A stretch of DNA of 64,000 nt, from assembly GCA_000320545.1 (NCBI GenBank), contig ADNK01000503.1:1-64000 (forward strand), in the 5' to 3' direction. Source of the DNA: Bigelowiella natans CCMP2755 (lineage: Eukaryota; Protista; Cercozoa). Below, in pieces: positions 5,949 through 61,199 of this stretch; the stretch's first letter is position 1, and every line of letters begins with the position of its first letter. The notes beneath the pieces were generated by a model. The model did not search any database and was not told the DNA's origin. It was given only the letters and a program-made list of their open reading frames with translations. The position numbers were made by a program, and so were the translations under genes.

Positions 5949-6657
5949 GTGCCACTCTATTTCTGGCGATTATTCACCGGATAGAAACCTAAAAAGTACT
6001 TAGCTCAATGTTCTCTATTTCAGGCAAATGTTCACCCTACAGAAACCTAATAAATGTTGGTCTGTTACTATTGTGATGTGTTATGTTGTAGGAGTGTTGG
6101 GCCACTATTCTTATTTCGGTCTATTTTATATTGATATAATATGCTGTGATATCTTGCTGTTTTCCGGTTTCGAATAAGCACATAATTCGGGTGAAAACAT
6201 TGTCGCATCTTTGTAAGGCATTCTACTTAATCTCTTTTTTGCTGTTTTTGTTTACGCTACGGAGTTATTTCGTTATTATTTCATTCCGGGCTTTATCATT
6301 ACCCGGGCTTAATTTTTACCCGAACAATATTCAGGTAAAAATTTTACCCCAAACTCAATCACAAGCCATTTTGGGTCATCTTCAAAAATTATGAACAAAT
6401 TTTTGTCAAAATGCCCTCCACGTTCTTCTCGACACACTCGGCCGGGCATAATTTAACCAGTGGAGACTATTAAGATCCGCTCATTGCGTATTTAGGCATT
6501 TTTAACCAGATGGAGGCAGGCTTCGGATTTGAGACATCGAGGATTCATTGTCGCTGCAGATAATTTCAATTGGCATCTCCACTGATAATTTTTGTTGCTC
6601 AGTTTATGAATTCGCATCGTGTTCACATTTCACGTCGAGTTCACGTTGGGCACAAGG

Positions 6658-7554
6658 ATGTATGCTGCGATCATGCTGCAATGCAATCTCAACCCTCCAC
6701 AATTGCTACTCTCAGAAGCTACAACTCACGGTCGTCTGGGGTCTCAGTTGCCTGCATTGGGCAGCAACCACCTGTATAGTTTTAGTGAAGGTGCTGGCTT
6801 AGCAGCGACCTGTTCGGGGGATTTTGGTTCTGTTGGAAGCAATTTTGATTCTCCTCGACAACATGCCACAGTCCCCCCGACAATTTTAGCTTGGAGTAGG
6901 TCTGGGAACACCATGGGCCGTTTGACTGACGTGCTGAACGACCCAGATTTCCGATTTTGCAGTCCAAATTTCCCACCGTCCTCCCTGAAAGTGGAAAAGA
7001 ATCAAAAGAAGCCTAGCCCATACAAGAATGGCGAAAATCATCGCAAGCATTACATGCTCTCTTCTGAATATCCCAAAAATTTGGCACAACCAGAACAGCG
7101 GGCGTCTCGTTCTTCATCGTCTACAGCGAATCAGGAGCAGGAATCAGGCGGCGTCAACCTCCCTGCAGCAGATGGCCAAGATACAGGAAAAAAGGAGTCA
7201 AAAGGGCTACAATCAGTCGTTCAAAATAATCATTCTACTCGAAATACTGTTATTCGTGGTGTGGAAAAAGATGAGAAAGATGATGCGATGGGAATGGATA
7301 ACAGAACATTGCCCGTTTTGGAGAGAAAAGTGAAGAGGAGAAAGAGGGCACGTGAGTCGTGTGGTCACTGTGTCCTGAAAAAAAGGAAATGTGAGGGTGG
7401 GTTTCCTTGCAAAAGGTGCAAAAAATACAATATTCCCCACCTTTGCAACAAGAAAGTCTTCGTCCCTCCATCGCACTGCACGTTGACACCAGGATGTACC
7501 AGAACAGATGGCTTTTCTCATGGAGGCCAGTGCAAGAGACAAAGAAGGCAATGA
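6658..7554 (+). CDS. Zn(II)2Cys6 (GAL4-type) binuclear-cluster transcription factor
   Basis: ORF 6619-7554, first ATG at 6658. Contains KRRKRARES-CGHCVLKKRKCEGGFPCKRCKKYNIPHLC (C-x2-C-x6-C-x5-C-x2-C-x8-C). Start codon uncertain. Confidence 0.8.
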   Translation: MYAAIMLQCNLNPPQLLLSEATTHGRLGSQLPALGSNHLYSFSEGAGLAATCSGDFGSVGSNFDSPRQHATVPPTILAWSRSGNTMGRLTDVLNDPDFRFCSPNFPPSSLKVEKNQKKPSPYKNGENHRKHYMLSSEYPKNLAQPEQRASRSSSSTANQEQESGGVNLPAADGQDTGKKESKGLQSVVQNNHSTRNTVIRGVEKDEKDDAMGMDNRTLPVLERKVKRRKRARESCGHCVLKKRKCEGGFPCKRCKKYNIPHLCNKKVFVPPSHCTLTPGCTRTDGFSHGGQCKRQRRQ

Positions 7555-8664: not shown

Positions 8665-10988
8665 TTACGACAAGGGCGTGGTGCATTGCAGTATTGTACC
8701 CTGCGGAATTCTGTTTCCATTCAAGAATATCTTTGCTTCCATTGGTTTCTTCCCCTGTTTCTGAACAATCAAAGGACGTAGGCAGTTTCCATCTCCACAC
8801 ACTATCGTTAGCTTGTCGTCGACCACTGTCCCAATCTCTACATCCTTAGCTGGGTCCCCAGCAACAACTTCCGCTCTTAACACCTAGAAGCGCCATTTCT
8901 TAGGAATACTGGAGATTCTCTTGATGAAGTAATTACGAATGAAATTTGAGGGAGTTACGAGAGAAATAACCTTAAACAATTCCCCATTTAGCTCAAAAAA
9001 GGCACAAGGCACCGGCGAAAGTCCGTGAACGAGATTGCGCAGCTCCTTAGCGCCCTTCCTGCTCGTATGAGAATGGAATTAAAATTTATAGAACCGGCCC
9101 TTTGACGACACAGGACTCTTGGACGAAAATCAAGGAAACGCGGGCTATGACATAAAATAACTATAGAACTTATCAGGATTGGCATACGCGAAGTCAAGCT
9201 TTCCATCTTGTTTATTGATCTTCGCCGCATGTGTTGCAGCGCTCTCAGGACTCTGAATCTCAGGAACCACGCTTTCGATACTGAGGGAAGTAATTTACTT
9301 TCTTAGATTGTGAAATTATATCCATAGCACGAGGGAATTTGAAAACAAAGTCAGAATTGCAACACAGAAGAGTTATAAAGTCAAAAATGAACTTAATACT
9401 TGTCGATGACTTCAAGGAGCATATCCGCTCTGTAAATTAAAGCTATTATCAGTCAATATATTTACACATGTGCATATTTTATGTAGAATATGCAAGATTG
9501 ATTGAGAGCTGTATCTTACCCAATTTCCTTCATGGTATCATGAAGTTCACCGCACGTGATGGTAGAATTTAGAGGGTAGACCTGTTGTTCAATTATTGCT
9601 TAAGTGCGAATAGCACAAATATTGTGGCACGTTCTTCACACAATCAATATCAGTAGCTAGCACAAACCTGCTTTTTCAATATAGGCCCAGTGTCCATACC
9701 CTCATCCAGTTGCATAATGCAAACACCTGCCCAAGCATGATAGCGATGGAGGAGTGAGGAATAAGTGAAACTTTGCCCGTTGGCTTATCACCAAAAGGGG
9801 TGACGGTAGACAAGGAAATTGTATTCAGGCACGAACCCGTTTCCTTATCACCGGCCATAATAGCGTGTGGGAGTGGTGCGGCGCCTCTCCAACGAGGTAG
9901 GAGAGAGGGATGAATGTTGAGGCACCCTAAGGAAGGGTTGATGCAAACATAATTATCACAAACGCTCATATAATATTAGAAGTACAAGTTTCAGATTATC
10001 CGTACCGTATTTAGTTGCTTCTAGAATTGGTTTCGGTAGAAGAAGACCATAGGCTGTGACCTGGTATGATGGTAGCATAATTCTTTCAAAATGGCTACGA
10101 CCTTACTTGCAGCGGGTGTAGATTCATATTCCTAGACCCAATGTCATAGATTTGTTCCTACCACAGCAAGATCCGCTGGGATTTCCTTAAATTCCTCCTG
10201 GTTTGCAGCCTTTCGGAGCGATTTCGGGGTGTATACTGGGATATCATGCTCCAAAGCAGTTCTGCCAAAAGAGATAATCTCACTTTTTGTTAAGCTGTGA
10301 TGACGGTAGTCCCTATGACTGTGTCTGTAACTTACTCGTGCACAGGAGATTTGCGAAGCTTACGCCCTCGTCCTGCCGGTCTTGGTGGCTGTGTGTACAC
10401 AGCTACTACCTATATATTTTAGATTAGAATGTTGAAAATTAGATTACATACAGCTACTATATATGTACAATGTTGTATTGTGCGACATGAATCTAACTAC
10501 TCGTAGATGGCACCACGTATTCTCATGATGTCAGTTACTCACTTCATGATTGGAATCAATTAGACGCTTGAGTGCAGGAACTGCGAACTCTGGAGTACCC
10601 ATGAAGATGACTTTGCGAGAAGGCGCGTTGGCGTTTTCGCTGTGCACGAAAGTAAACGCTCTAGAAAGTGAATTTCGCGAAGGGACGGCTGCGAGCTTCG
10701 TCAAGAAACGTGGTACCGAGCGAAGGCCCTAAAATTTCAGCGTTATCTCTGCATTAATCAACGGATTAACTGGGTAGTTGCTACCGTAAATGCTCGGAGA
10801 CTAGGAAAGCCTGTGGACAGTCGCATAGTTGCTGGGTTGGATTGAGGAGTGCTGAGTAGACTCCTTCCAAGCGTCAGGGTTCCAAGCAGAAGTGTTGCCA
10901 GTATTGCAGCTGCGTTCAATCTCACACGGTCCAGGCGGGGTCGTCGACGTTGAGGATGGGCCAATATTGGACCTGGGCAGGACGCCAT
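8665..10988 (-). CDS. fmt: Methionyl-tRNA formyltransferase, organelle-targeted
   Basis: Exons [88 protein letters not shown], and C-terminal [17 protein letters not shown]. Long N-terminal targeting extension. Confidence 0.93.
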
Positions 10989-11740
10989 AAGGGTGGGGTA
11001 CTGCTTGACCTGACGACGTGTGGCTGTCTGGCTGTGGTTTTCATTGAGAGTAGTTTTCAGCACCAGACTCTTTTCGTACGATGTTTCAGGGTAAGCAGGT
11101 ATTTTCCAGGATTTCACCCTGGTTTTCGTCTAACGACATGTCTGATGATGAGAATCATGGTCATATTCTGAGAAGGTGGGTACGTCCATGCTCTAAACAC
11201 TTGTTCTTTCCGTGAGTCACATTATTTTTGGGTGAAACTACCTAAGATATAGAGTGGAGGGTACTTGCGACATCGATGCTCTCTGACTGCGAAGAAGAGC
11301 ATCGGTGGGAAACACGTGTCATTTTTATTATATCTACAGTACAAAAGACCAATTTGAGAGAAATTCGCGCAATGGTTCGGAACAGAAGAAGGAGATGGAA
11401 GAAAGTCTGCTCTCCTCGCACCTCCCTCCCGTTCAAAACTGAACAATCTAATGAGCCTTGGCCTCACCAACCATAAAAGAAAAATCATGAAAGGAAACAA
11501 AGACAACGAGACGAAACCGAAGGTGCCATGTTGTATTGAAACGAGTAGAAACCACGAAACTACAAAACTACAATACAAAACTACAAAACCACAAAACCAC
11601 GTCGTGTACGGCAGACTTTACCCTTGTTCCTCACAAAGAGAGCTTGTGAGAGGCGGTGAGGTAGATTCACGCTGGGATATTTGATAGCTAGTATTAGGTC
11701 GGGAAAATGCCATTCTTTTCACACATGCTAACCCATACAG

Positions 11741-13120
11741 AAGGCAAAGACCGGGAAGTTCGGCAAGTTTCTTGCTGCGAACACTGTGCTGGACCTCCTC
11801 AAGGAACGAAAGGAAACGAAGGAGATTATCACACTCCAGCATAATGTTACTGTGGAACGAGCTCTCAAGACCCTGAACCAAAACAAGATTACCAGCGCCC
11901 CAGTGGTCCTTGCCGCCTCTGTTCTTGACAACGACGCAAACGATTTCATGGGTATTATTGATGCTGGAGAAATATTGAGAAAGCTTTGTCGGGGTAATTC
12001 ATCTAAACAAGCTGAAATTTACAAAACAAAAGATTTAAGTTGTATTGGTTCATAGAAACTAGACTCTTGGAGGAGATTCAAAAGATTCAAGAACAAAAAC
12101 TCAATGTCGATGAAAAGATCGAGGACTGCGAAAGGGCATTTGAGACTTCTTGCAGGGAGTTTTGGCAACGGAAGCTTATCCAAGTGTGTGGACAGGATGT
12201 GACCTTACTTCCTACTGTTTTCGCGGACACAGACCTAAAAGTAGAGATTATAACCGTTTCTTAATGTGAAGTTGCTCATAGGATTTTACCTTTCTTTCAG
12301 ACTCTAATTTCACAAATGCTATTCGACAAATCTGGAAACCCCATCCATCGTGTAGCTCTTCTTAACCAAGCCGAAGTACAAGCGCTTGTCACTCAATCTG
12401 ATGTGCTAAAGTTCCTTCATCAACACAAAAGCGAAATAGGAGGAATCCTGAAGGAGAAAATCGAAGATCTAGGTATTTGTACTCCTCCCAAGGATAAGCG
12501 CACATAGTTGAGACATATAATTTACTTAAGGACTATACAATCCGAAGAAAGGAGTAGTAACAGTAACGAGTGATACCATCGCTATGGAGGCATTCCATGA
12601 AATGTTTCAGAAGAATCTCAGCTGCCTAGGTATTATCTTGTTGCTTTGCGATTGATATACGTAACCAACATCATAAATGTGATTTAAGGAATTGTAGACG
12701 AAAATGGTACCATGCTCGGCAATCTCAGTGTCTCAGATTTGAGGGTAGATTCCACGTTTTTTAATAAAATATACACTACGAAAGAAATCAAAAAACATAT
12801 TTTTCTAGCTGTAGATTTTTCATTACTTTTTTATGAAATCCTTGTAGGGACTTACTGTGGATAGATTTTCCTCTTTATCACATTGCGTGACCGAGTTTCT
12901 GAAGATTTCCAAAGCACTCTCGCGATCGTTCGCAACCGTTCTCAATGCACAGCTCAACGATCTTCGAACACTCGCTGTGAATCCAGGATCCACGTTTGAG
13001 GAACTTCTTGACCTCATAACCAAAAATCGAGTGCATCGAGCGTATGTTGTGGACGAAAATTGTAAGCCCCTCGGGGTGATTACTTTGTCAGATGTTTTAT
13101 TAATGCTGTTAAAAGCTTAG
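11741..13120 (+). CDS. Four-CBS-domain protein (AMPK-gamma/SNF4/SDS23-like); first exon not located
   Basis: Exons TVERALKTLNQNKITSAPVV...FMGIIDAGEIL, IHRVALLNQ...LVTQSDVLKFL, IVDENGTMLGNLSVSDLR, RVHRAYVVDENCKPLGVITLSDVL. All are typical CBS repeats. Confidence 0.85.
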
Positions 13121-14176
13121 ATCACATTCTTCATATTGCTAGTCAACACTGAAAATACCATCCGAAGATCCCATCTTGACATTGATCGACATGTGTTGAA
13201 GTTGTGCATGTATCTCTTTTTAGACCTTGCAGATGTGCACGTATTATGCTTAGAATGTCCAGTTAATCAAAGAAGACGATGCCGTGGACCATTTCGACGG
13301 CATTGACGAACATGCGCTGCGTCCATATTCACAATTTAGCAATGCGGCATTTATGTTATCGTAATGCTAATTTTTATTGAGTTGTGCACTGTTGTGGCAT
13401 CTATGTATGTTGTGGCTCGGCGTGAAGCCTAAAGACGACACATTGGGCCCATCTAGCCATGCATGGCTGGCTAGCTAGATGGCAGCGCACGCGCTACAGA
13501 CGAACATCTGTGTCTCTAGGCCTAGCTAGCTAGCAGAGCTGTGCACGTGCGTGCGTTTTGCGTGTACCAAAACTAGAATTACCTCCGGGACATCATGTTT
13601 CACGTCGTAGGCTCCAAGACGAGTTGGTGTTCTCTTTTGGAAAGTAAGCTAAAGAGTCTAGAGAGTACTGCTAGACTGCCCCATATAACGAGTCTGTCGT
13701 CGCTTTACTCAATCTAGCAATGTGCATTTTCATACTATTCGCCGCTATTTATTGAGATCATTACCATTCACCTTCTCCCAAATTTATTAAGTTATCAATC
13801 ATACGCGCTGTAGATTCCTCCCTGAAGAATTAACAAATTACTCTAGCATGAGACCCGTCATAAATTCAGAGTGCGATCTTAACGTCTAACCTCATCTCGT
13901 CTTCACTACGCTCAGAGCGGCGTCTGGTTGCCAACTTAAAGAACCTAGTAGGTTTAGCAGTAAGTTTAGCTCGCTCTCAATTATAAATCGAATAAGATTA
14001 ACTTCAAATATCATCTCTTCAGTTTTGCCCTACTCACCTTGTATATTGCTTTGTCAGGATACACAACAATTGCTCCTGTCATACAAAGTAAATAAATAAA
14101 TAAATATATATATATATATGGTAAAGTTTTTTTATCTCATTAGAATTTTCTGGTTAAAGGTGACGACGACTAAATT

Positions 14177-17100
14177 TTAAGGCAGCCCTCCCCTCCCCCC
14201 CGGAGATGATTGTGGTGTCACAAAGACTGGTGTTCTTTCACTAGTTGTCATCTCAAAGGTGTGCAGGCGATGGAGCTTACCTGAGGCCTCCGCAACAAGG
14301 TGTGAGACATCGGAACAACCTGCAATAAGGTTTAGAATCGTTCACCGTACTTTAGAAGGAAACATTCCTGATATTTCATGCAATGTGCTGATATACTACT
14401 ACTACTACTACTTCTACTACTACTACTACTGCCACATCAAATATCCCTACCTTTACTCCTAAGATATCAGCAGCTCGTAAAGAATAACGATGGTCACTTC
14501 TACTGCTGCTGTTGTTCTTGTTGCTGCTGTTGTTATTCTGGTCGGAGTTACTCCCATCACCATTTGCAGGCTTCTCTTTCACCTCCTCCGCTTCATATAC
14601 GGCCAGGTACTCGAGCCCACTGGTAACGCTTTCGAACGGGTTTTGGTATAGTTTGACTGAAGGAGAGACGACAACAACTATGAGAGGATCACGTACTACT
14701 ACTCGCCCATGTAATAATGTCAATAATCGTATGCAGCACCATCACCAGCAATTACCTTTGCCACTTCCACCGCCACCACAATCAGTACTACTACTGCTAC
14801 TATTGCCACTACGTCAGATAATAATATACTATCAATCAACACCAATTTCTGAGAATCCAGCCAAGCATACGTGGCCCGTATCTGCGGACACCATAAATGC
14901 CTGAAGAATAGGAACCCATGCACAAAGATGATGGTGAGGAGCTCAAGAAGCAAACACGACTATACGCGATGAAGAAGCTGATGAAAACAAAAGGCTCAAG
15001 TGCCACCATCACTATCATCATCATCATCATTTTACCTTACAGTCATTCGTATCCGCTATAACCGCCATTCCTCCATAAGTAGCAACGTGCTTCAGAGCTA
15101 CACCCTATTCCACGACAACTATTAGATTTTTCTGCCAAGTAAAACGAAGCATCGAAATGCATGGGAATACTGCGAGTAAAGTATCACCTTGGATGTGACT
15201 GAGATTTGGTACATATTGATAGAATTGTCCCACTCCATACCGAGTACGCCGCTGTTTGTGTATGTTTGTGTATGTTTGTGTCTGTGTGTGTGTGCGTGCT
15301 CGCGCCCATTCGATATGTAATACAAACAGGAAAAGGATGGTCGTTATAACCAAGCTATTACACCCTGACACAAAACATGAAATTGAGGATGGATACTAAC
15401 AAAATGACGACGACGACGACGATGATGATGCTGGCAAAGTAATAGCTAGATGTAATGCACGTACAATCCTGCTAATAAGGTTAAGTCCGGATCCATTGTC
15501 CCCACGCATCGTCCTTTCCAAATTTTGAAACGAATATTAAGTATCTACCATTCGAGGTGAGGTTTCATAATAAAAGCATGAAGTTCAACTGCATGCACCC
15601 GCTAATATAAAAAAACAACAGCAGAAGGAAAGCTATAATAGTTTTTGGATTTACTCGTGAGTGACCTGTCATTGCAAACTCATACTGGTAGGTCGTCCTT
15701 CCATCCACATTGAACAGCTGAAAAATAGAGATTTACAGGAGGAAGAAGAACTGGAACAACTACTAGGCTATTTCCCGTATAATTCGTCAAAAGATGGCAT
15801 CGTCGCTGCTCAGCAGCGCAACTCTGTGTGTGTGCGTGTTTGCTATGTGGTTGTTATTACACTGAGAAAAGTTTCCTTCTCCTGCTCGTTGCTATGAGGA
15901 TATCGGAAGGCCTGTTGTTAGGAGGGTAAATAGAAACACATGCCACTGCTTAATGAGGAGAGCGGGACAACGAATGTAAAACCGTGCTTCACAAACAAAA
16001 CAATGGTCACTAGGTACATGTTCCATATGAGGGCTCTCCAAGCGATCTGAGTCAGACGAGTAGGGAAAGTTGGCGACTATAATAAGCTGCAGCATGCTGG
16101 ATGGCGCGATAGGAACCCCATCCACGGCGAGAAAGGCTATGTGCTATTCGTAGTTTTGATGAAGAAGAAAACAACAGTCTTAAGTTAAAGGGTTTTTTAG
16201 AAGGCATCATATGAATGAAAACTGGATGAGAATGTGAAGGGAAGGAACTCATATAATCGACGGTCTTGGCTTAGATTGGAACTTCATTTGAAAATTACAT
16301 ACTACACATACCGCTATAGTACCCGTTCTATGCAATGTAAAAGAAGAGAGAGGTGGATGTATTTTGGATATAACGATAAATCGGATAGTCACAACACAAC
16401 GGCTGTGTTGTGGTTGTCGTTGTTGTTGTTGACCTGCGGCCCTGGAGTAGCCTCCGAGTCAAAATGGCTCGAGAACAATCTTTCAACGTTTTCGATTTCA
16501 TATGATATCCTCGTCTCATGGTTACTTTCCTTCTCTTCTTCATCGTCCTCGCCCCCCCCCGCTACTGTTTCGCTATGATGGTCGTCATCGCTGGGGCGGG
16601 TGAGAGTAACTAAAGTAATAACAGATTTGCGGAGGCATTTCGGCCGTTTGGTATACAGAGGAGACCCGACTGACATATGAAGTATCAATGTGAGGGGAAG
16701 GAGAGAGAAACCACTTCGATCAGATATATCAATTCATGCTTGGTAATATGTGATGATACTGCAATTTGAGACATATCAACACCACACAGGGATAGCTTGT
16801 TGCGAGCCAAGCACTCCATTATGGCAGCAGTAGTAGTACCTTGGTTGACCTGTGTGGTGTATGGGAGCTGTGCAGTCGCTGCTGCTGCTGCTGCTGCTGC
16901 ACCTTGTTCTTTTTCTAGGTGGAGATGATCATCGGCTGAGTGGTTACTAGATACTTGATTTCGTTCATGCACTTTTTGTCCGTCATACTCTACTTCATCC
17001 AAGTCATCACCGCCTACGTGTACATTGCTATCTTCTACAGGAGGATCGATGTCGGACGAGCAACGCTGCTGTGTCTTAGCTCGTTTATCATAGTTGGAAG

Positions 17101-33600: not shown

Positions 33601-35871
33601 CAATCTTACTCATCATCGTCACCTTAGGATGCTCTAAGCAACGACATGGCATATACGCTACCGTTTCAGTCCAAAATCCGGCTGCTCGCTCTACTCATCG
33701 ACAAGGTGAAAAGATGAGGAGTATGCACATTTTAGTGGCAGCAGCAGCAGTAGTAGTAGCAGTAGTAGAAGAAGTAGTAGTAGCAGTAATAGTAGAAGAA
33801 GTAGTAGCAGTAAGTAGGTATGTAAACTTGATGATCGTTTGATGAATTTCATCGTCTATTACGAGGAATCAATAATAAATGAGGACAACGACTTCTAACC
33901 ATTAACATGCACTACTACCATTTCCCCCATTCATTTATTCATTTATGCACCCACCCGCAAAAGGCTAGCTGCTCGTGCTCATCCATCATTATCATCATCT
34001 TTGTAGGCCCTCTGTAGCAGCAAGACTCTCCACAAACACTTAGACGAAGGTAACGTTGTTGTTGTTGTTGTTGTTGCGTGCAGTGATGCGAGAGAGACAG
34101 AGAAAAAGAAGAATACGCATTATCGTCTCGAGAGAGCAGAGAAGGAGGCCCGAGGAAGAAAGCCTAAGAAAGGAGAGAATAATGATGCAGAAATCTCTCC
34201 TTACAGTCTAAAGTGCTTAATTTTGCTCTCTCTCCCTCTCTCTCCCTCTCTCTCCCCCCCTCTCTCTATCCCCTCCCCACCCCCCTCTCTCTTTCTTTCT
34301 CTGTTTGTGGGTGGTGTGTGTGGTTAATCAGGAATTTCGCTGATGAGAGAATGCAGTATACGACACAGGAAGCAAAAAGTATGATATTAATACTAACATC
34401 AACATGTATGCTTGTGACAAAATCAAGATTTACATTACATGAATAAAAATACGAAGCAACGATGTACGATCCCAGCACTCTAAACACCATCCATAATCAT
34501 TGACATCATCATCATCATCATCATCATCATCGTCGTCGTCGTCGTCAACACCGACCCTAACTACTACTACTACCTACTACTACTATTCCCACGCAGACAT
34601 TGAAGAAGCAGAAGAACCAGAAGTCGGTCAGTGCTGAGTGTGCAAGCGTGTACGCTGACATCGTCGCGCAAGTAGTACGGAGCCAGGCCTCCTCCTCAAA
34701 GAAGAAGAAGGAAACCAAGGAGCAGCTTGCAACCGCTAAGGCCGAACTCGTAAGGAAGGCAGAGAAGTACATTGACGACCTTGAGATGTAAGTATTGTGT
34801 TAGTGTCTGTGGTTCTGTGGTAGGGAGAAGACGAACATGGCGATGATGATGAGGAGGAGGAAGAGGAAGGGGAGGAGAATGATGTGTATAATAGCGAGCT
34901 AAACCCATGAGGGAGAGACATCAGAGATGACAACAAAGTACTTAGATTTATACTCGTAGGGAGAAAGAAGGCAAGCGGCAGAAGGAAGTAGCAGCATTGA
35001 TGGCCAAGTACCCACTGCGTGCAACGACATTGATGGGAAAAGACCGTTGGTTGAGGAGGTATTACGTGTTTGGAAATCATGCTTCTAAGGAGGCCAGTGC
35101 GATCTACGTATTTGATCCAGCAGCTGAAACAACCACAACTACAACGACGACGACGACGAACCAGTGCTGGGGTGCTTACGAAACCAAGGAACAATTTGAC
35201 CGACTCCTCAAGTACTCTGCTGATAATGATGATGATGATGATGATGATGATGATCGATTTGAGGAGCAAGAACTATATTATTACCAAAGATAGATAGATA
35301 GTAGTGCTAGAATATATCTTTAGAAGAGAAGGAGAATGACGACAAGAACGAATATCAAACGCCTTCTTCCCATATGATGTTCTTCGTACGCACGCGCGAC
35401 GGTTCTTTGTCGTTAAGATGAATGATAATGATGTTATTATTGCAGATTTTTATCGCCATGTGGAATGCGCGAATCTCACTTACTTAAGGGTCTTAAGGAG
35501 CACAACTGGAAATGGCCGCCAAAAGCACAGAAGAAGGCCAAAAGCCAGTTGGATTCAAAGAGCAAGGTTCGGCAATCGATAAGGAGACTATGTTTAGAAG
35601 AACAATAGAGGCAGGAGGAGGAGGAAGAGGGGTTGGAGGTAGGGTGAGGAGGTAGGGGGAGGAGAGATTCACCTACAGTGATCTAATTCGCAGCAGGAGA
35701 GAAAGTCGCTCTTTAGATATCCTTAATCAAATTTCCATCCTGAAATCCCCCCCCCCCTATGTAGAGTTCTCCAGTAACACCTGCTCGCCAGAAGGCTCGA
35801 AAGAGGACGGGTACTAGTAGCTACTAGCACTAACAGACGCATTTAACAAGATTTCTCTACACTAATGTGAT

Positions 35872-35910
<39 letters not shown>

Positions 35911-36578
35911 AGAAATCACACTGCCCTTCCTTGGTTTCCTGCCTGTGGATCATTTCTGATCCATCTTTTCTTCGTTCTTCCGTCCCCTCCCCCTCCTTAG
36001 GTAAGACTCCAGGACGATATAAGGTCGCAGGGGATGTCGAGGAATCGACCACAACCACCACTACCAACAGCAACAACCCAGGGAAGATCAAGAGCCCTGC
36101 TACTACTGCAAAGAAAGAAGAAGAAGAAGATACGGATACGGCAACAACGACAACAGCAAAGCCTGCAGTCGATGGGAAATCAGCCTTTTCTTCACCATCT
36201 TCATTAGCCAAGATCAACTCCCCTCCTATTACTTCAATGCGGGCAGCAGCCGCTGCCGCAACCGCTAAATTACAAAATGGAACAAAGGTAATTTATACAT
36301 GTATGTAGAGGGAGACGATGTTTATAAAACCACCACCACCACCACCTCTGGAAACCACCTGGTTGGATGTTAATCTATGAAACACTGGGCAAATACCAGA
36401 GGGAGATTCGTTTCAGAGTTAGAGAGAGAGAGTTTGGGGGAAGAAAGAAGGACAGAAAATGAGGGAGCACTGAGGTGTACGTATCGCATTATCACATGCT
36501 ACCGCTGGAAACCACCTGGTTGGATTTTGTTGATGAAACATCGGGCAAATACCAGCGGGAGATTCTTCCTATCATTTC

Positions 36579-36621
<43 letters not shown>

Positions 36622-37803
36622 GATTGAGAACGAGAGAGGAGAGAAAGAGAGAGGGGGGGGGGGTAGCCGTGGGGCGAAGAATAGTTTGGGAGATTGAACC
36701 GTTGTATTCATTCATTCATTCATTCACCGCTGGAAACCACCTGGTTGGACGAAATCGTTTTTACGTGAAATATCGGGCAAATACCAGCGGGAGATTTTAT
36801 CCATCAGCGCTCTTGATTGCCTGCCTGCCAACCTGCCGAACAAAAGAAGATATCATTATCATCATCATTATCATCATCCCACCAGCAAGATCATCGTTAT
36901 GACGTAGATGTGCATGTATATGATGCCTTCAGGCGATGGAAGACGACTACGACGATTCGGAAGTAAGTAGGGATGATGGCGAAGATGATGTTGATGTGTG
37001 ACAAGAAGTAGAGGCCGTATATACCATCCATCATCAGAAAGCTATATCACATATCATAATCATGCTGATACGTCCTTTCTACAATCTACCACCGTCAGGA
37101 TGAGATTGATAGCCCATACATAACGAAGAAACTAACACGAAATATGGTAATAATAACTAACTGCGTACGTACACAACAATGACATCCTGCTGCTGCTGCT
37201 GCTGCTGCAGCAATGGTCCGAGATCACTCTCTTGTGCATCTTACTAGTGTTAGTGTATTGTATAGCCGCTTTGTTCTTCCTGTCATCGTTGTGTTGATAG
37301 CCTTGCAAATCTAATTGTTGTTGTTGTTGCTGTTCTAAAAATAATGTTTAGAAACGTGAGGAGTTATCGTCGAACTTCAAGCCTCCTGACATCAATGCAC
37401 CGCTACAATCCGACCCTAAGTCAGTCATTCTCATAAAACAAACCTTCTACTTCTTAATTATTTAATATGAGCATCACGACTGAGCACTACTATCACTAAT
37501 GATTGCTGTTATCATCATCATCATCATCGTTATGGCTATCTATACTATCAGGGAGAAGGAGTACTTTGCAAAGATGATCCAAGCCAAAAAAGGACTCATC
37601 GCATCGCAACTGTTGTTCAGGTAACAATGAAGGAATGGTTGTAATAATCAAGGAATGTATTGTACTGTAGATCCACACTACTGCTGCTATGCTATTATTA
37701 AGATGATTGACTGTGCTATCCACTCACCACCTATCTTTTTCCTCACTGTACTGAATCATCATCCTCATCGTCATCCTCATCGTCACCACCACCAGTATCA
37801 TCG

Positions 37804-37837
<34 letters not shown>

Positions 37838-38752
37838 CTTCCTCCTCCTCGCCCTTACTATGATGGTTATCTTTCTCATCGTAGGCTTGATGGATGTTAT
37901 CTCCCTGTTTGCTATGTTTGCCAAGAGGTAGTAGTAGCAGCAGCAGCAGCAGCAGTAGTAGTAGGAGTAGTAGTAATACCGTTATTGATTATGATGGGGG
38001 TGATTCTTACTTAATATCTTTTATAATACACCCCCAGTAGTCATGTCGTGAATGGTTTTGGTAGTGTAATCAGACGAAGTATTGTTTGTGAACATAATAT
38101 GCCAATCACCGCACCATCCTCTCCCTCCTCCCCATCATCATCATTATCTGATTTATCATCCGTTTAATTGTTCACTCTTCGTTGCAGACATTGGGAGAAG
38201 ACGAATGGCATTGCCCCTACTCGCACAGGACTTTCAAGAAGTCCGAGGTAATAATAATGATATAACAAAATAAATAATAATAATATTATAATAATGATAA
38301 CGAATAACAACTAATAATGATCGGTCTGGTAGTAGCTAGTAGCAGCTAGCTTCAGGTCATCACCCTTTCACTTTGCTGCGAGACGATGAGCAACAACCTC
38401 CTCATATAACTGATACGCCATCATCATATAGCTGCTTGTCACGATGATGATGATGATGATGGTAGTGGTGATGATCCTCCTCCTCCTACTCCTACTACTC
38501 CCAATACTACAGTACACGAAGGAAGAATTTGCTGTCCTACTGGATGAAGGCAAACGTGAATTTGAGAGTGGAGACATTATCGATTATAACAAGTAAGTAC
38601 GTTTGATGTTGTAATAACAATGTAGTAGTAGTAGTGGTAGTAGTAGGAGCAGCAGCAGAGGCAGTTGAGTTGGTCCTCCTGTAAGGAAATCTTCGAGGAT
38701 GCAACTGGTTCTATCGGTAGCAAAGAAGCAAAGGAGAAACGTCATCATCGTT

Positions 38753-46782: not shown

Positions 46783-47411
46783 CTAATATATATATTACGA
46801 CATATATTATTAACACTCGCCGATAGAAGGGATAGGCATCGAAAGATCATCATCAGCATCATTAACCTCATAAAAATTACTACGGACTGCTAGCACATCA
46901 TCTTCATCATCATCATCTACACATCGAAGACAATAACCTTGTGGTGAAAGCTGAGGCCACATATATGGCACTGAAATGGCTTGTATCTAATTGATTCACG
47001 GGCAGAATATCGATCAGAGAACACAACTGACGAGTCGCAATAAAGCAGGTGTATGGTGCTTGGAGGGGGGACGGGTGAAAGTCAGTGAACCAAAAATTGA
47101 GAGCAAAAAAACAAGAACAATCGCCTTTCGATAGGAGACATGTGCGAAGTTTTATTTCCGGTTCCACCTCTCATCCAATGTAGACTCAAATATATAAAAA
47201 TCATGTTTTGATTCAATATCTTGCAGTAGTCACATGTCTAACATTGGTCAACTACCCGTCATGCCGCCGTTTGTGTGTACGCAAATGCCCATTTTGGGTG
47301 AAATTGCGATTGCACACCTTGCATCTGGAAGAGGAGGTGGAGAAGGAGGAGGAAAATCAAAAGTCAATCGAATGCATCACAATGGTGTGTGTTTAATATC
47401 TACATTAAATT

Positions 47412-47458
<47 letters not shown>

Positions 47459-48780
47459 TTCTTCCCCTCACTCTGTTGTTTCACAGACAGACCTACCTGA
47501 AAGGTTTTATGCCCTGGTGAATTCGCATGTGGGCATTCTGACATACAGTCAATATCCATCCATGAATACATCATCACTTTCATACTTCACTCAAAGCAAA
47601 TTTGAGGAAACTGAGTGAAACGGTTGTCAATAGCACAGGGTACTACATTAGATATTTACCAAGTTGTCTATCTGATGAAACGACTTGTTGCAGAGTCGGC
47701 ACACATGTGGCCTATCAGCTGCATGAGTTCGGATGTGTCTGAAGTATAATTGTTTTCAATGCGGTCAATGGAAGACAACAGCAGAAGTTAATACAAGGAG
47801 TGAAGGTTTCAGTTATTCTTGTTAATTATTATCGAAACATCTACTGCAATGTCTTCTTCTGGGCTGTCGCAGATGTTTATGCGAAGGTACCTCCACATTC
47901 CTAAAATAGCGAACTTGGGATCGAAACTCTGGCAGTGCGAAAAATAACAAAACACTTAGGTTAGAGATGATATCCTCGCATCACGTATCTGGATCGTGCA
48001 TGCCACCGCTTCACCCTATCAACGCTCACTAAGTCTTTTTGTATCTCTTATCTGACCCTGTTGCAAATTGTGCACGTGTTATTCCTATCAAGAGAAAGGC
48101 TGTAGATCTCCCTCAAGTGCTGCTCCAAGTTTTGACTGGTATATGCTATGCGCCTTCCAGTTTGATTGTTGCTGCTTTGGCCATCTTCATTGCCCTCAGA
48201 ATCTACCAGCTGCCGTTGCAGAGGGGACATCGAAGTCATCTTAGCAGAGATTTCTATCTGACCACGTGAGACGGATGGAGGCTGGCGGTTAGCCTTCCCC
48301 AAGGCGATCTTGCGGCCGTTACGTGCACTTCTCAACCAAGGAGTAGTCGTCATCATATCGTAACCAGTACTGCGTGTGATCAAAAGTAACAGGATGCTGC
48401 TGGCAACAACTACCCGTCGCAGCCATCTTGTCTGCTATAAAGGAAGTGGGCATTATGTCTAGGATAAGCATGTTGTTATTTCATAAAGATAATGTTGGAA
48501 TCCATGACAATAATATCGAATGCTTGCTACTACCTCTGCTGGTCGTTGGCGATTATCTTCTTCGCGCTGATCCTGGTAGTTGGATCCCATCAATGTATAC
48601 TTTCAAATATAACCAAAGCCTCGAGTCCAATGGATCCCATAGTTATTTGCATCTCTGACTGCAAATTATCTCGTTGTCTCACTCACCTGTTTGAAACACG
48701 AATGGATTGAGACGTAGATATACGACCTTCTCCACAGGGGCGTCGCTTGAGACATGGTTGTCACCCATGGACAAACACAT
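43691..48780 (-). CDS. Multi-finger C2H2 zinc-finger protein
   Basis: Spliced fingers: RCKVCNRNFTQNGHLRTHKRRH, YKPFQCHICGLSFHHK/VSMVAHVHKH, PYNCTLCGKTFFQ/KSNMQTHLRVRH, FPCPKCNK/FFGQATQLEKHLGTH, YKCDKCGVKFARRH, LQNHMRRH..FFCP/CNRTFVLKMHYYRH. Termini approximate. Confidence 0.82.
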
Positions 48781-49207
48781 AAGCCAAATCGAAATACCGT
48801 TCGAGTTTGCGATCAATATTCGCACTATTCCGATCATATAGGAAATCTAAGTGTGGATACAAAAGAAAGTGCACCTGCCACATGTCAGCGCGTGGACCGC
48901 CATTCCGGCGAGAGCCGTTGTCGTCGTTCTGGGTTTCAGTTCTCGCGTTTAGCCTTGTCGCAGATACTGAATTTGAATGCCTTTACGAAAAACGGCAAAC
49001 GAACAACAATTGGTTGTCGTATTAACCCAAATGGACGTTATTTCCTTAAGATTATACCCCCAAAAAAGTACATAATGGCAGATTTGCTTCAAAACCCGAT
49101 GACGACGATGATGATGATGATGATGAGGATGGCGAGGACGGAACCTTAGACGAAGTAAGGAGAGAAGTATTTAGAACGATTTTAAACTTTGGAACGCAGC
49201 TCTACAG

Positions 49208-50981
49208 ATGAGGGAAGTTGTTACTATTTGTATTGGCCAAGCTGGCGGACAGGTTCGTGTGACTGCGTGTGTGGTAAACAGCTTTCAATGGCACATCCCC
49301 ACTTACTACTACTCTTTGTAGGTAGGGAAATCTTTCTGGGAGCTAGCTTGTCTCGAACATGGTGTTCAAAATGATGGAACACTGTTGGACGAAAAGTGTG
49401 CGGGTAGTATCGGGACATTGTATTCTGAGAGCAAGGAGGAGACTTGGGAGCCCCGGACCCTGTTTGTTGACCTTGACCCTGAGCCAATCGAAGCACTTCA
49501 AAAGTCAGCAGCCTCAATTCTAAATCCAGCCTCTCTCATCTCTGGGAAGAAGAGTGCAGGACACATTTTCTCAAGAGGCAGGTCTGAGAGTGTAAGGAAG
49601 GAGGTTCTCAACGTTGCACTTGACAGGATCAGGGCTCTGGTTGACCAATGCGAATGCCTGCAGGTTACCTAAGAGATAGCATGTTGTAAGTAATGATAAG
49701 TAATGAATGACAGAAATACTTCCAACCTTCTTTGTACGATCCATTGATGAAATCATTTGCACAGTCTTTCATAATTCTCAATTCGCTGGGAGGCGGGACA
49801 GGATCAGGTTTCGGATCCTTGTTGCTAGAAAGTCTGTCCAAAAATTATCGTAAACCAAAGACCGGGTTTCATATCTTTCCATCATGTGCTGAAAGCAGCA
49901 GCAACTTCTGCTCATCATCTCCCGAATTCTCCTCCTCCACTCTGGAATCGTACAACGCAATGTTGCACGCACATACCCTAACGGATCACACAGACACGTC
50001 AGTAGTCCTGGGCAATACTGCAATCTATGATATTTGTCGCAGTTCACTTGGTGTTACCCGGCCCGGTTATGGCAACTTTAATGAAATTATCGGCCAATTA
50101 ATTTCTGCCAGCACCCTTGGATCACGTTTCGATTCAGCCCTCTCTGTACAATCCTCCTATTTCCTCACTGCAGATGTGAGTCAGTAACGAACGATTATTG
50201 GTGGTTAGGTGGATATATCCGAGACCCAAACTGGCTTAGTACCCTATCCACGACTACACTTCTATCTTACTTCCTTTGCTCCAATCACCACAGATGTTGC
50301 ACTGCCTAAAGCAAAATTAAATGCTAAGGTTCTTAAATAAACCGTCAAAACAAAACCCTGAAATAATTTTGGTCAATCATTTCCATTCATCATGAAATTT
50401 AGGTCGGCGAATCAATATGTGATATTCCAACAAGAGTTTGCCAACTCGTCTCCGATTACGCTTTATATGAGGAGCCATCTGTACTCGATATTACAAAGGC
50501 AGCTTTTGAGGCAGGAGCGTCGCTGGTTAAATGTGATCCCAAGAATGGAATGTACATGTCGTGCTTCCTCATGTATCGTGGGGAAGTATCATCGAAAGAC
50601 GTAAATGAAGCTATCAAGCTGCAAAAAGTACGGGATGACATAAAGTTTGTTGACTGGTGCCCAACTGGCATGAAATGCGGGATAGCAGGCACACCAATGG
50701 TCGTAACATCTGATGGTACCATGGTGAAGACAAAGAAATCCGTCATGTCGTTAGTGAGTAGCACCGCTGTAAGGCACGTCTTTAGACGTCTTGCAGAGAT
50801 GTTCGATGTGATATTTAAGAAAAAGGCTTTCCTTCATTCATATTTGGCTGGCGATATTATGGAGGAAAATGAATTTATCGAGGCTCGAGAAAATATCGAA
50901 GATTTGATCCGCGATTACGAGGATTGCGAGCTAGATGATGATGCAGATGAAGATGAGGGAGGATTCTCTGATGATGGGTGA
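49208..50981 (+). CDS. Divergent alpha-tubulin paralogue
   Basis: [86 protein letters not shown], acidic tail. At least four introns. Confidence 0.92.
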
Positions 50982-52129
50982 CATCGCAATTTGATGTCTA
51001 CTTTAGGAGTGTCAATTATAAAAATTTCCCAGGCTACGCTGCATAGATCATCAAATCAACAAAAGTGTATTACCTGCAAAATTCTTGAAGGTTGTTTTCA
51101 TAGAATTAGGTTGCCTCATAGCATACCACTGGAAATGAGTGCAGAATGATTACTAATAACATATGCACACGTACATGCTGTCACGCGATACATAGCCGTA
51201 CGATACGTGCACATATGCATTTGTGCTAGCTAGCTAGTACAGACAGAGCAGTCACGACATCACTACGCACACACACATGCAAAGTATGAAGTCACAGCTC
51301 ACTGCGCATGTCTCTATATGATGTAGCTATCTAGCTATATAGCTACGCGTGTCGACGACTTCGTCTATACGTCGCGCATGATCTGGCATGTGATGATGTA
51401 TCGTATTCTATATCATAGCTACTACATCGTAGTATCGTACGCACACCGCGCTAGCGCGGCGACCGTCTGCACATCTAGACATGCGACATAGCACAGCTGA
51501 ACAGGACTATGCGCAACGTAACAGCCACATTCAATATGTATATCATTACACAGCTAGAGAGCTAGACAGTCTAGCAGTGACGCTCTCGTTAGCTCGCTTG
51601 CGTCAATATCTCTAGATCTAGCTATTACGCATGCTAGAACATATAACATTAGCTTTTATATATAGTTCAGACGATGCATGTCTACAAAGTCTACGTGATA
51701 AAGCGATCTCTGCGCATCGCATGCGGCGCGCGCGTCTCTAGGTCTGCTAGTCTAACCAGCAGGTTTGACACGTTAGCAATGTGTCAATGCTAGAATGGGT
51801 CAATTCGAGAATTGTAGCTATATATTATCCCCTATACATGACTTTTATAGCTAGCATGCACATATATGGGTTGGAGCGCACACACACAGTCATATGGCTG
51901 CCAGGTATTATATCAGCCAAACTTGTCTGGTGAGATCAGAAAATGCATGCTAGAGGATTTATTAATAGGATCTCCTCAAGCCTAGCTGTCTGTCTGAGAA
52001 TAACGTCCTTCCTATCTCTAGTTTTACAGCATACTTTACGCCTTGGTACTCGAATCAAGAGTAAGCGATAAACTCTATGACGACGATAATACATTGATTA
52101 TTCATGATGACGCCTGCAATTCGACCCCT

Positions 52130-59907: not shown

Positions 59908-61199
59908 AGGTGAATCAATGGTGAACTTGTAGATGTGAATGTGATTCCATTGAGGATGATTAGCAGGGGGATGTGGGGAGGGGTTAGGAGTAGAGCAGAT
60001 AGCCTAGACCCAGGGTTCCGAACAGTGCACGCGTTTTAAACGAATTGCGAAACAAAGTCGAATTGATGGAAGATAATATTCTTGAATGAACTTATCTAAT
60101 TCCCGACTTAATTCCCACCACAAATGGGGATGAGGTGTCGTCTATACAGCCTACTACGACTAATACTACTCTACTACATGTAACACACATTGTTTGCTGC
60201 CATGTCGTTAGTATGTGCCACTTTAAAACGATTCGAACTACCCTATTTACGAGAGACGAATAGCAAAAGATTTTCAGGATTTGAAGATTTAAACCCACCA
60301 CCATTGAAATTGCTACAATCCGATTAGGACCCTCACTCCCGCGGGAATAGAACCAGGAATGCCTACCCACAGGGATACAGACTATGTATCATTTCGCGTT
60401 GATCGAGCCAAATTTGAAGTTTTCACGCTCCCCACAGAAGCTGCAAAATATAAGTTAAAAAAGGTAATTGATTAAGTGTGCATGAGAACGAAAGTTTTCA
60501 TCAGAGTGCTATCGATTATATGTGCATTAATTCATCTGCTCATGGAACACTTACCCAATATAGGGGAAAGATGTAAAAGCGCTATCGATTCTAGCAGATA
60601 ACACGATCTACAGTAACATTAAATCAAAGCGGCAGGCCAAAAGCGAGGATCTAGAGAAATATTTTGGTAATTGTAAAATGAACTGTGAAATCTCTGGAAT
60701 ATGACGAACGTCCCATTTTCAATTTTGAACGTGTGACAGGTACAACGGATAGGGAAGTCATTGTCAATAAAATTCTGCTCAATGGCAAATTGAAGGTTAG
60801 AGGGAAAAATAACCCCGATATGAAATGGAAGAGGAAGTTAGACAACGCAAATCGAAACCGAATTTGTGGGTGTGAAAGAGTTCTTTCTTACTGATCGTTT
60901 ACCTTGCAACTCCTGTAGTGTGTCCGACCTCTCTTAACCCTGTCAAATCTTGTGAATAGGTGAAGGTTTACGTCGCACAACCGATAACGGAAATACTCCT
61001 AGATCTTGTCTTTGGTACTTGATGCAACATAATCGCGATGATAAATCACAAACGACATGATAGTGGTCATTTTATATGTACCAAAATCATGCCCATATTA
61101 CAATGCAATTCGATTAATTTTTTTTATGAATATTATTATTTTCATACCTTTGGGCCACCGGACCCTCAGCACTAATTCACAGTAGATGCAATAACACTA

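Follow-up and report, generated by a model that had tools for sequence, protein, structure and literature searches.

Three intronic hairpins of Bigelowiella natans as candidate single-hairpin H/ACA guide RNAs

The host intron and the layout of the hairpins

The window, i.e. the whole stretch of 64,000 nucleotides that was analysed, belongs to the 91 Mb genome of Bigelowiella natans, which has a GC content of about 43% and is dense in short introns. The locus of interest lies within a multi-exon gene of the + strand that is composed of many small exons. Spliced transcript contigs of ~3.5-4 kb from three separate studies skipped 645 nt with GT..AG ends at this place, which shows that the intron is real. 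It carries three related hairpins of 65-72 nt in the sense orientation of the host gene, surrounded by unrelated flanks, in agreement with the initial annotation of this DNA. The coordinates of all features are collected in Table 1.

Table 1. Features of the hairpin locus (positions in the window) and the two-hairpin snoRNA family found elsewhere in the genome.
Feature	Position	Strand	Details
Host intron	36288-36932	+	645 nt, GT..AG; joint 36285->36931 (cut +2) in spliced contigs of three studies
Copy 1	36344-36409	+	66 nt; A-1 36344; stem I 36345-36351 with 36396-36402
Copy 1, pocket and stem II		+	pocket 36352-36357 and 36390-36395; stem II 36358-36363 with 36384-36389
Copy 1, tail		+	G 36403; AGA 36404-36406; UUC 36407-36409
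Spacer 1	36410-36500	+	91 nt, GA-rich; unconserved; without second hairpin
Copy 2	36501-36565	+	65 nt; stem I 36502-36508 with 36552-36558
Copy 2, pocket, stem II and box		+	pocket 36509-36514 and 36546-36551; stem II 36515-36520 with 36540-36545; AGA 36560-36562
Spacer 2	36566-36725	+	160 nt; (TA)n microsatellite, G run, (ATTC)n run
Copy 3	36726-36797	+	72 nt; stem I 36727-36733 with 36784-36790
Copy 3, pocket, stem II and box		+	pocket 36734-36739 and 36778-36783; stem II 36740-36745 with 36772-36777; AGA 36792-36794
U1184 snoRNA paralogue	G000:C1395, about 60570-60720 (L020:917-1067)	-	
U1184 snoRNA paralogue	G000:C3055 (L021:1324-1477)	-	
U1184 snoRNA paralogue	G000:C2459, about 8723-8873 (L022:1490-1640)	+	

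The host protein was examined through single exons and ORFs. A WSD/DDT-type motif was recorded upstream of the intron, as a WSD Pfam match in the ORF 34997-35293, which lies partly within the exon 34960-35211. Several exons of the host gene were very small: 36933-36962 (~30 nt), about 35765-35810 (~46 nt) and a 40-nt block inside 37622-38185, the last of which appeared in the read table as letters between a TA..GC joint. Elsewhere in the window, the fungal-type Zn(2)-Cys(6) DNA-binding domain was matched marginally, at E 4.7e-5, by an ORF at 6619-7554 (+), the genome being non-fungal.

The RNA data at the locus consisted mainly of spliced-mRNA-type contigs, low-depth retained-intron contigs and 11 raw RNA-seq reads, and no small RNA was seen among them. 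The low-depth contigs (238-263 nt) spanned 36734-36950 and so reached from copy 3 through the remaining intron into the following exon; they look like unspliced precursor and are uninformative on a small RNA. Between copies 2 and 3, the (TA)n microsatellite (36583-36625) and the G run (36656-36668) break the RNA-seq contigs, and therefore the zero depth at these two places was regarded as technical.

The order of elements was the same in each copy: an A, a 7-bp lower stem (stem I), a 6+6 internal loop, a 6-bp upper stem (stem II), an apex and the tail G-AGA-UUY. Stem I (CCKCUGG/CCAGMGG) was perfect in 3/3 copies and preceded by the A in 3/3, with one compensatory pair, which is U-A in copy 1 and G-C in both other copies. 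The internal loop AAACCA/CAAAUA was invariant, as had been noted earlier. In stem II, CCUGGU faced either ACUGGG or AUCGGG, and both changes stayed paired by G-U wobble, so the previously reported preservation of pairing was confirmed for this stem. The apex was variable (19-26 nt). From the top of the pocket to the start of the AGA the distance was 14 nt (6+7+1), exactly as first described, and the upstream pocket side had 6 nt.

Copy 1 folded with an MFE of -20.7 kcal/mol (z -2.6), the expected fold making up 72% of the ensemble. Copy 3 also adopted the expected fold (MFE -22.4 kcal/mol, z -2.6), and its hairpin was kept in a 221-nt context. Copy 2 alone kept the lower stem, while the MFE favoured an alternative upper part. 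Folding of the reverse strand was poorer (z -1.4 to -1.6), since each copy contains three G-U pairs in the upper stem, which are valid on the + strand only. The better fold and the G-U pairs are thus found on the sense strand of the host.

Conservation and copy number

The similarity of the three copies was limited to the stretch from the A immediately before stem I (A-1) to the third nucleotide after the AGA. Within these limits, the core had 5/46 variable columns, when the apex had 14/26 and the flanks (20 columns on each side) 38/40; the core differed from the apex (Fisher test, 1.6e-4) and from the flanks (3e-16). The pocket contained no variable column (0/12), stem I contained 2/14, corresponding to one U-A to G-C double change, stem II 2/12, both wobble-paired, and the tail 1/7. 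All four stem substitutions preserved pairing. As the unconstrained parts were saturated with changes while the stems, the loop and the tail were held, the comparison of the copies points clearly to selection on the RNA hairpin structure.

The lower stem had initially been described as covarying. One true compensatory pair (U-A versus G-C) was found, and it was the only independent compensatory event; however, the covariation was not significant with three paralogous sequences, the observed level being reached by 149 of 500 shuffles.

Exactly three copies were present in the whole 91 Mb genome when it was searched by a 20-mer with <=3 mismatches, by a covariance model (R1) built from the copies and by the upper-stem pattern. 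The covariance model returned only the three hairpins, with scores of 93.9, 92.5 and 87.9 bits for copies 1, 2 and 3, respectively, and with the filters off it detected no relic copies in the window. A stretch at 36672-36697, which the model does not pick up, resembles the 3' half of the hairpin with its tail (GGGC...GGGAGAUUG). The resemblance was not significant; the stretch may be a decayed fourth copy or a relic of the hairpin 3' half. Homologues were not found in two metagenome-contig pattern scans, and the exact-product look-ups of the ORFs over the locus gave nothing on record. In Rfam, no match was obtained at the gathering score, and the matches at the E-value level fell only on the TA repeat, far below the cut-off.

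A hairpin-shaped repeat in three intronic copies could also be expected of a MITE-like small mobile element or of a cluster of microRNA-like precursors. Such an origin is highly improbable. The copies are confined to one locus and one strand, they have neither target-site duplications in the flanks nor terminal inverted repeats beyond the stem, and a dispersed mobile element is excluded since there are only three copies in the genome. Further, a 7-bp and a 6-bp stem enclosing an open 6x6 internal loop do not make a Dicer-type duplex, and the microRNA families of Rfam matched nothing but the TA repeat mentioned above.

Comparison with single- and two-hairpin H/ACA RNAs

The trypanosomatid H/ACA-like consensus applied in Psiscan describes a single hairpin of 57-91 nt with a perfect stem I of 5-8 bp, which in most RNAs is preceded by an A at 1 nt and is followed by 1-3 free nt, AGA and 3 nt to the end (PMC2613932). 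According to the same consensus, the upstream pocket side is 5-11 nt long, the target position lies 13-16 nt from the box, a perfect stem II adjoins the pocket, and the target duplex has 3-9 bp per side (PMC2613932). Those published features of the trypanosomatid and Euglena single-hairpin AGA-box RNAs that can be read from the sequence were all present in the B. natans hairpins. The unit lengths of 66, 65 and 72 nt were delimited by conservation, and copy 2 had the competing upper fold; the perfect 7-bp stem I, the A upstream in 3/3 copies, the pocket side of 6 nt and the distance of 14 nt all agreed with the consensus, and so did the bipartite 5+5 duplex flanking an unpaired U-C at U1297 of the SSU rRNA. 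The tail G-AGA-UUY was invariant, and the similarity ended at AGA+3, where the 3' end of a putative RNA would lie. In contrast to the described RNAs, the host is a rhizarian alga and not a euglenozoan. Moreover, trypanosomes have only single hairpins, whereas B. natans also has canonical two-hairpin H/ACA snoRNAs, as described below.

A crude Psiscan-like scan of both strands of the window returned about 14 unrelated loci that fitted the model with a 10-bp target. Therefore, the consensus fit alone proves little, and what carries the case is the pattern of conservation. The best of the background loci (9572-9643) was rejected, as it does not fold as a guide.

In archaeal guides, the upper stem holds the K-turn or K-loop to which L7Ae binds, and the box is ACA. 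No fit to a K-turn was seen in the conserved UGG/GAAAY upper region of the B. natans hairpins when this was inspected by eye only. The archaeal H/ACA sRNAs (one to three hairpins) resemble the cluster in having an own ANA box for each hairpin, and their single- and three-hairpin forms are functional; the linkers in B. natans are, however, far longer. Lone guide-like hairpins beside canonical snoRNAs are also represented by the single-hairpin structures with an H box in Pezizomycotina (Gao, Jones and Rivas 2021, PMC8216456), but those candidates are intergenic and putative, and the lineage is different. Both single- and double-hairpin forms have been reported in Entamoeba, as is proposed here for B. 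natans; however, the single-hairpin RNAs of Entamoeba have ACA as their box and are considered to derive from double-hairpin precursors by cleavage (PMC3542256).

To see how general the single-hairpin form is, pockets able to pair with universal pseudouridine sites were searched for throughout the genome. The pattern for the h31 site, U1184, gave three mutually related loci (Table 1), which constitute a standard two-hairpin snoRNA family of ~140 nt. The lower stem of hairpin 1 comprises 6 bp, two of which are compensatory, and the pocket of this hairpin pairs 6+6 with U1184 of 18S rRNA. This position is m1acp3-pseudouridine in yeast and human and corresponds to U1192 of Arabidopsis. The hinge starts with AGAUGA, AGAUUA or AGAAUU. 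Hairpin 2 is conserved, with a pocket pairing 4+7 with U1207, and the 3' box (ACA, ACA or AUA) lies 14 nt from this pocket. A conserved GUCCRCAGG was observed downstream of the family and may be a shared 3' splice site. No description of the U1184/U1207 family was found in the literature searched, and the genome pattern search for guides of four helix-69 sites yielded none that was convincing. The Cbf5 DKCLD domain is encoded in the genome.

This family shows that B. natans has canonical two-hairpin H/ACA snoRNAs, that their pockets obey the 14-nt rule and that AGA, the normal start of the H box, is a box on the Cbf5 side in this genome. Two points followed from it. The single hairpins are not the general rule of this genome, since a canonical family is present; and the AGA of the hairpin cluster may be a truncated H box rather than an AGA box of the Euglenozoa type, since the H box of the canonical family begins with the same letters.

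The pocket geometry, the 14-nt rule and the lower stem followed by an ANA-type box are common to the lone units and the canonical H/ACA RNAs, and the intronic location is probably shared too. Additionally, the 5' hairpin of the canonical family ends in AGA like the lone units. In contrast, the boxes of the lone units (AGAUUC, AGAUUC and AGAUUU) do not have A as the sixth base and thus differ from ANANNA, and ACA is missing. In place of a short hinge, unconserved low-complexity stretches of 91 and 160 nt lie between the units. Folding revealed no second hairpin beside copy 1 together with spacer 1, or beside copy 3 together with the rest of the intron, and no ACA was in place; the flanks between the copies were at random identity and without a stable fold. 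A conserved second hairpin with an H box, by which the initial annotation would have turned the copies into standard two-hairpin RNAs, was therefore absent. Having no partner hairpin and a box that is neither ANANNA nor ACA, the copies were classified as lone units of the 5'-hairpin type. It is known that the 5' hairpin of yeast alone binds its protein set with low nanomolar affinity in vitro (PMC5778458), that a eukaryotic H/ACA snoRNA cut to one hairpin has lower activity (PMC12745780), and that a lone hairpin is less active in yeast and animals (PMC12745780, PMC5778458).

The same features allow another reading, namely that the hairpins are leftovers of a tandemly duplicated two-hairpin H/ACA snoRNA, whose 3' hairpins decayed and whose 5' hairpins are nonfunctional or fading. 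The AGAUUY tail indeed resembles the start of the canonical H box, the spacers are long enough for a former second hairpin, and the weak tail-like stretch at about 36672-36697 would fit as well. Decaying 5' hairpins should, however, diverge like the spacers and the apex, when in fact 41/46 core columns were invariant and all stem changes remained paired. Besides, no parent snoRNA with this pocket was found elsewhere in the genome, and we consider the descent from fading remnants to be quite unlikely.

The predicted rRNA target and the proposed function

The target was searched for among the SSU, LSU and ITS/5.8S rRNA of the genome itself together with U2, U5 and U6. The invariant pocket pairs 5+5 by Watson-Crick pairs (10 bp) around U1297 of 18S rRNA, in the context AUUUG-UC-UGGUU, and this was the only match of >=7 bp in the whole set. 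The SSU segment named by the initial annotation was thus located in the 18S rRNA of B. natans. Its alternative, the V4 segment UUUG-UU-GGUUUC, was rejected, as no such pairing exists in this 18S rRNA. Of the pockets shuffled from the same 12 letters, 0.9% reached 10 bp and 7% reached 9 bp. A search for a canonical guide of U1297 by a 6+6 pattern gave 0/33 matches with a stem adjoining the pocket, as judged by eye.

By our own count, U1297 presumably equals U1305 of yeast and U1362 of human, neither of which is known to be a pseudouridine. Counted from the m1acp3-pseudouridine position (U1184 here and U1192 in Arabidopsis), it corresponds to U1306 of Arabidopsis. The pseudouridines reported for the Arabidopsis SSU rRNA include U1302 and U1311 (equal to human U1367), but not U1306 (PMC8351944). 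Hence, the predicted pseudouridine at U1297 would be a new site, with a neighbour on either side that is modified in other eukaryotes.

It was proposed that the three hairpins are solo H/ACA-type guide hairpins for U1297 of 18S rRNA, released separately or as one three-hairpin RNA; on the sequence evidence we hold the chances of this to be about even. Once the intron had been spliced out and debranched, one Cbf5-Nop10-Gar1-Nhp2 set would assemble on each hairpin by way of the lower stem and the AGA box, and exonucleolytic trimming would leave ~1 nt upstream of the stem and 3 nt downstream of the AGA. The products would be either three separate RNAs of 65-72 nt or one longer RNA with all three hairpins. 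The invariant pocket would then pair with 18S rRNA between helices 35 and 37, holding U1297 at 14 nt from the box for isomerisation, and the copies would be isoforms for one site, since the pocket is the same in all three. The cluster likely arose by tandem duplication of a 5'-hairpin-type unit, a suggestion based on the canonical snoRNAs of the genome, which start their H box with AGA. The assignment as pseudouridylation guides made by the initial annotation is accordingly favoured by the architecture, the geometry and the rRNA complementarity, and is weakened by U1297 not being among the pseudouridines listed for Arabidopsis and by the two-hairpin form of the canonical RNAs.

Both of these points speak for a different explanation, in which the hairpins form a selected structured element of the intron or pre-mRNA with a role other than that of a Cbf5 guide. 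They could be a triplicated site for an RNA-binding protein, which would recognize the invariant loop and affect splicing or expression of the host, or they could represent a Cbf5-independent AGA-like RNA. Selection on the stems and the loop is explained equally well by a protein-binding hairpin, a pseudouridine is not known at U1297 (PMC8351944), two hairpins are the standard for H/ACA RNAs of the genome, and trypanosomes do have AGA-like RNAs that share the shape of guides and are Cbf5-independent (PMC2613932). Such an element, however, leaves unexplained the sharp ends of conservation, one nucleotide upstream of the stem and three downstream of the AGA, the invariant AGA at 14 nt and the split 5+5 match around a U in the conserved rRNA core, which shuffling reproduced so rarely. 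We therefore regard it as rather unlikely. If the hairpins are not Cbf5 guides, they would still be a clearly selected intronic RNA structure.

Returning to the guide interpretation, its broader form states that B. natans makes stand-alone single-hairpin, AGA-ended H/ACA guide RNPs beside the two-hairpin ones, and that these install a lineage-specific pseudouridine at U1297 of 18S rRNA. This is put forward tentatively, with slightly less than even confidence. No paper on nuclear H/ACA RNAs of chlorarachniophytes was found, one small-RNA study covering the nucleomorph only, and in this respect the earlier remark that the architecture is unreported in this kind of organism was upheld. As far as the literature was searched, the hairpins would for the first time extend the single-hairpin guides beyond Euglenozoa, Entamoeba and archaea, and would be the first of them to be intron-encoded. 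They would also be the first entry in the undescribed nuclear snoRNA set of chlorarachniophytes, one that predicts a new rRNA modification site.

Mechanistically, it is still an open question why nearly all eukaryotic H/ACA guides consist of two hairpins, and the rule has been explained structurally by cross-talk between two protein sets (PMC12745780). If the proposal is true, B. natans would provide a natural case of the eukaryotic Cbf5 complex acting on a lone hairpin in the presence of two-hairpin RNAs, in which it could be seen whether one protomer suffices in vivo. It would also follow that single hairpins can evolve repeatedly, in B. natans probably out of a 5' hairpin and the start of its H box, and are not a peculiarity of Euglenozoa.

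Some minor observations were made on the rRNA genes themselves. At 18S positions 1140-1165 (L011), B. natans reads GGACACCACCAGAAGUGGAAC, a lineage signature, where most eukaryotes presumably have GGGCACCACCAGGAGUGGAGC. The rDNA units were distributed over >=6 contigs (C1238, C1247, C508, C1914, C1917 and C1918). Contig C1238 carries SSU at 9457-11253 (+), LSU at 11934-15263 (+), LSU at 46969-50295 (-) and SSU at 50991-51679 (-), so that its units form an inverted pair ~32 kb apart and not a plain head-to-tail array.
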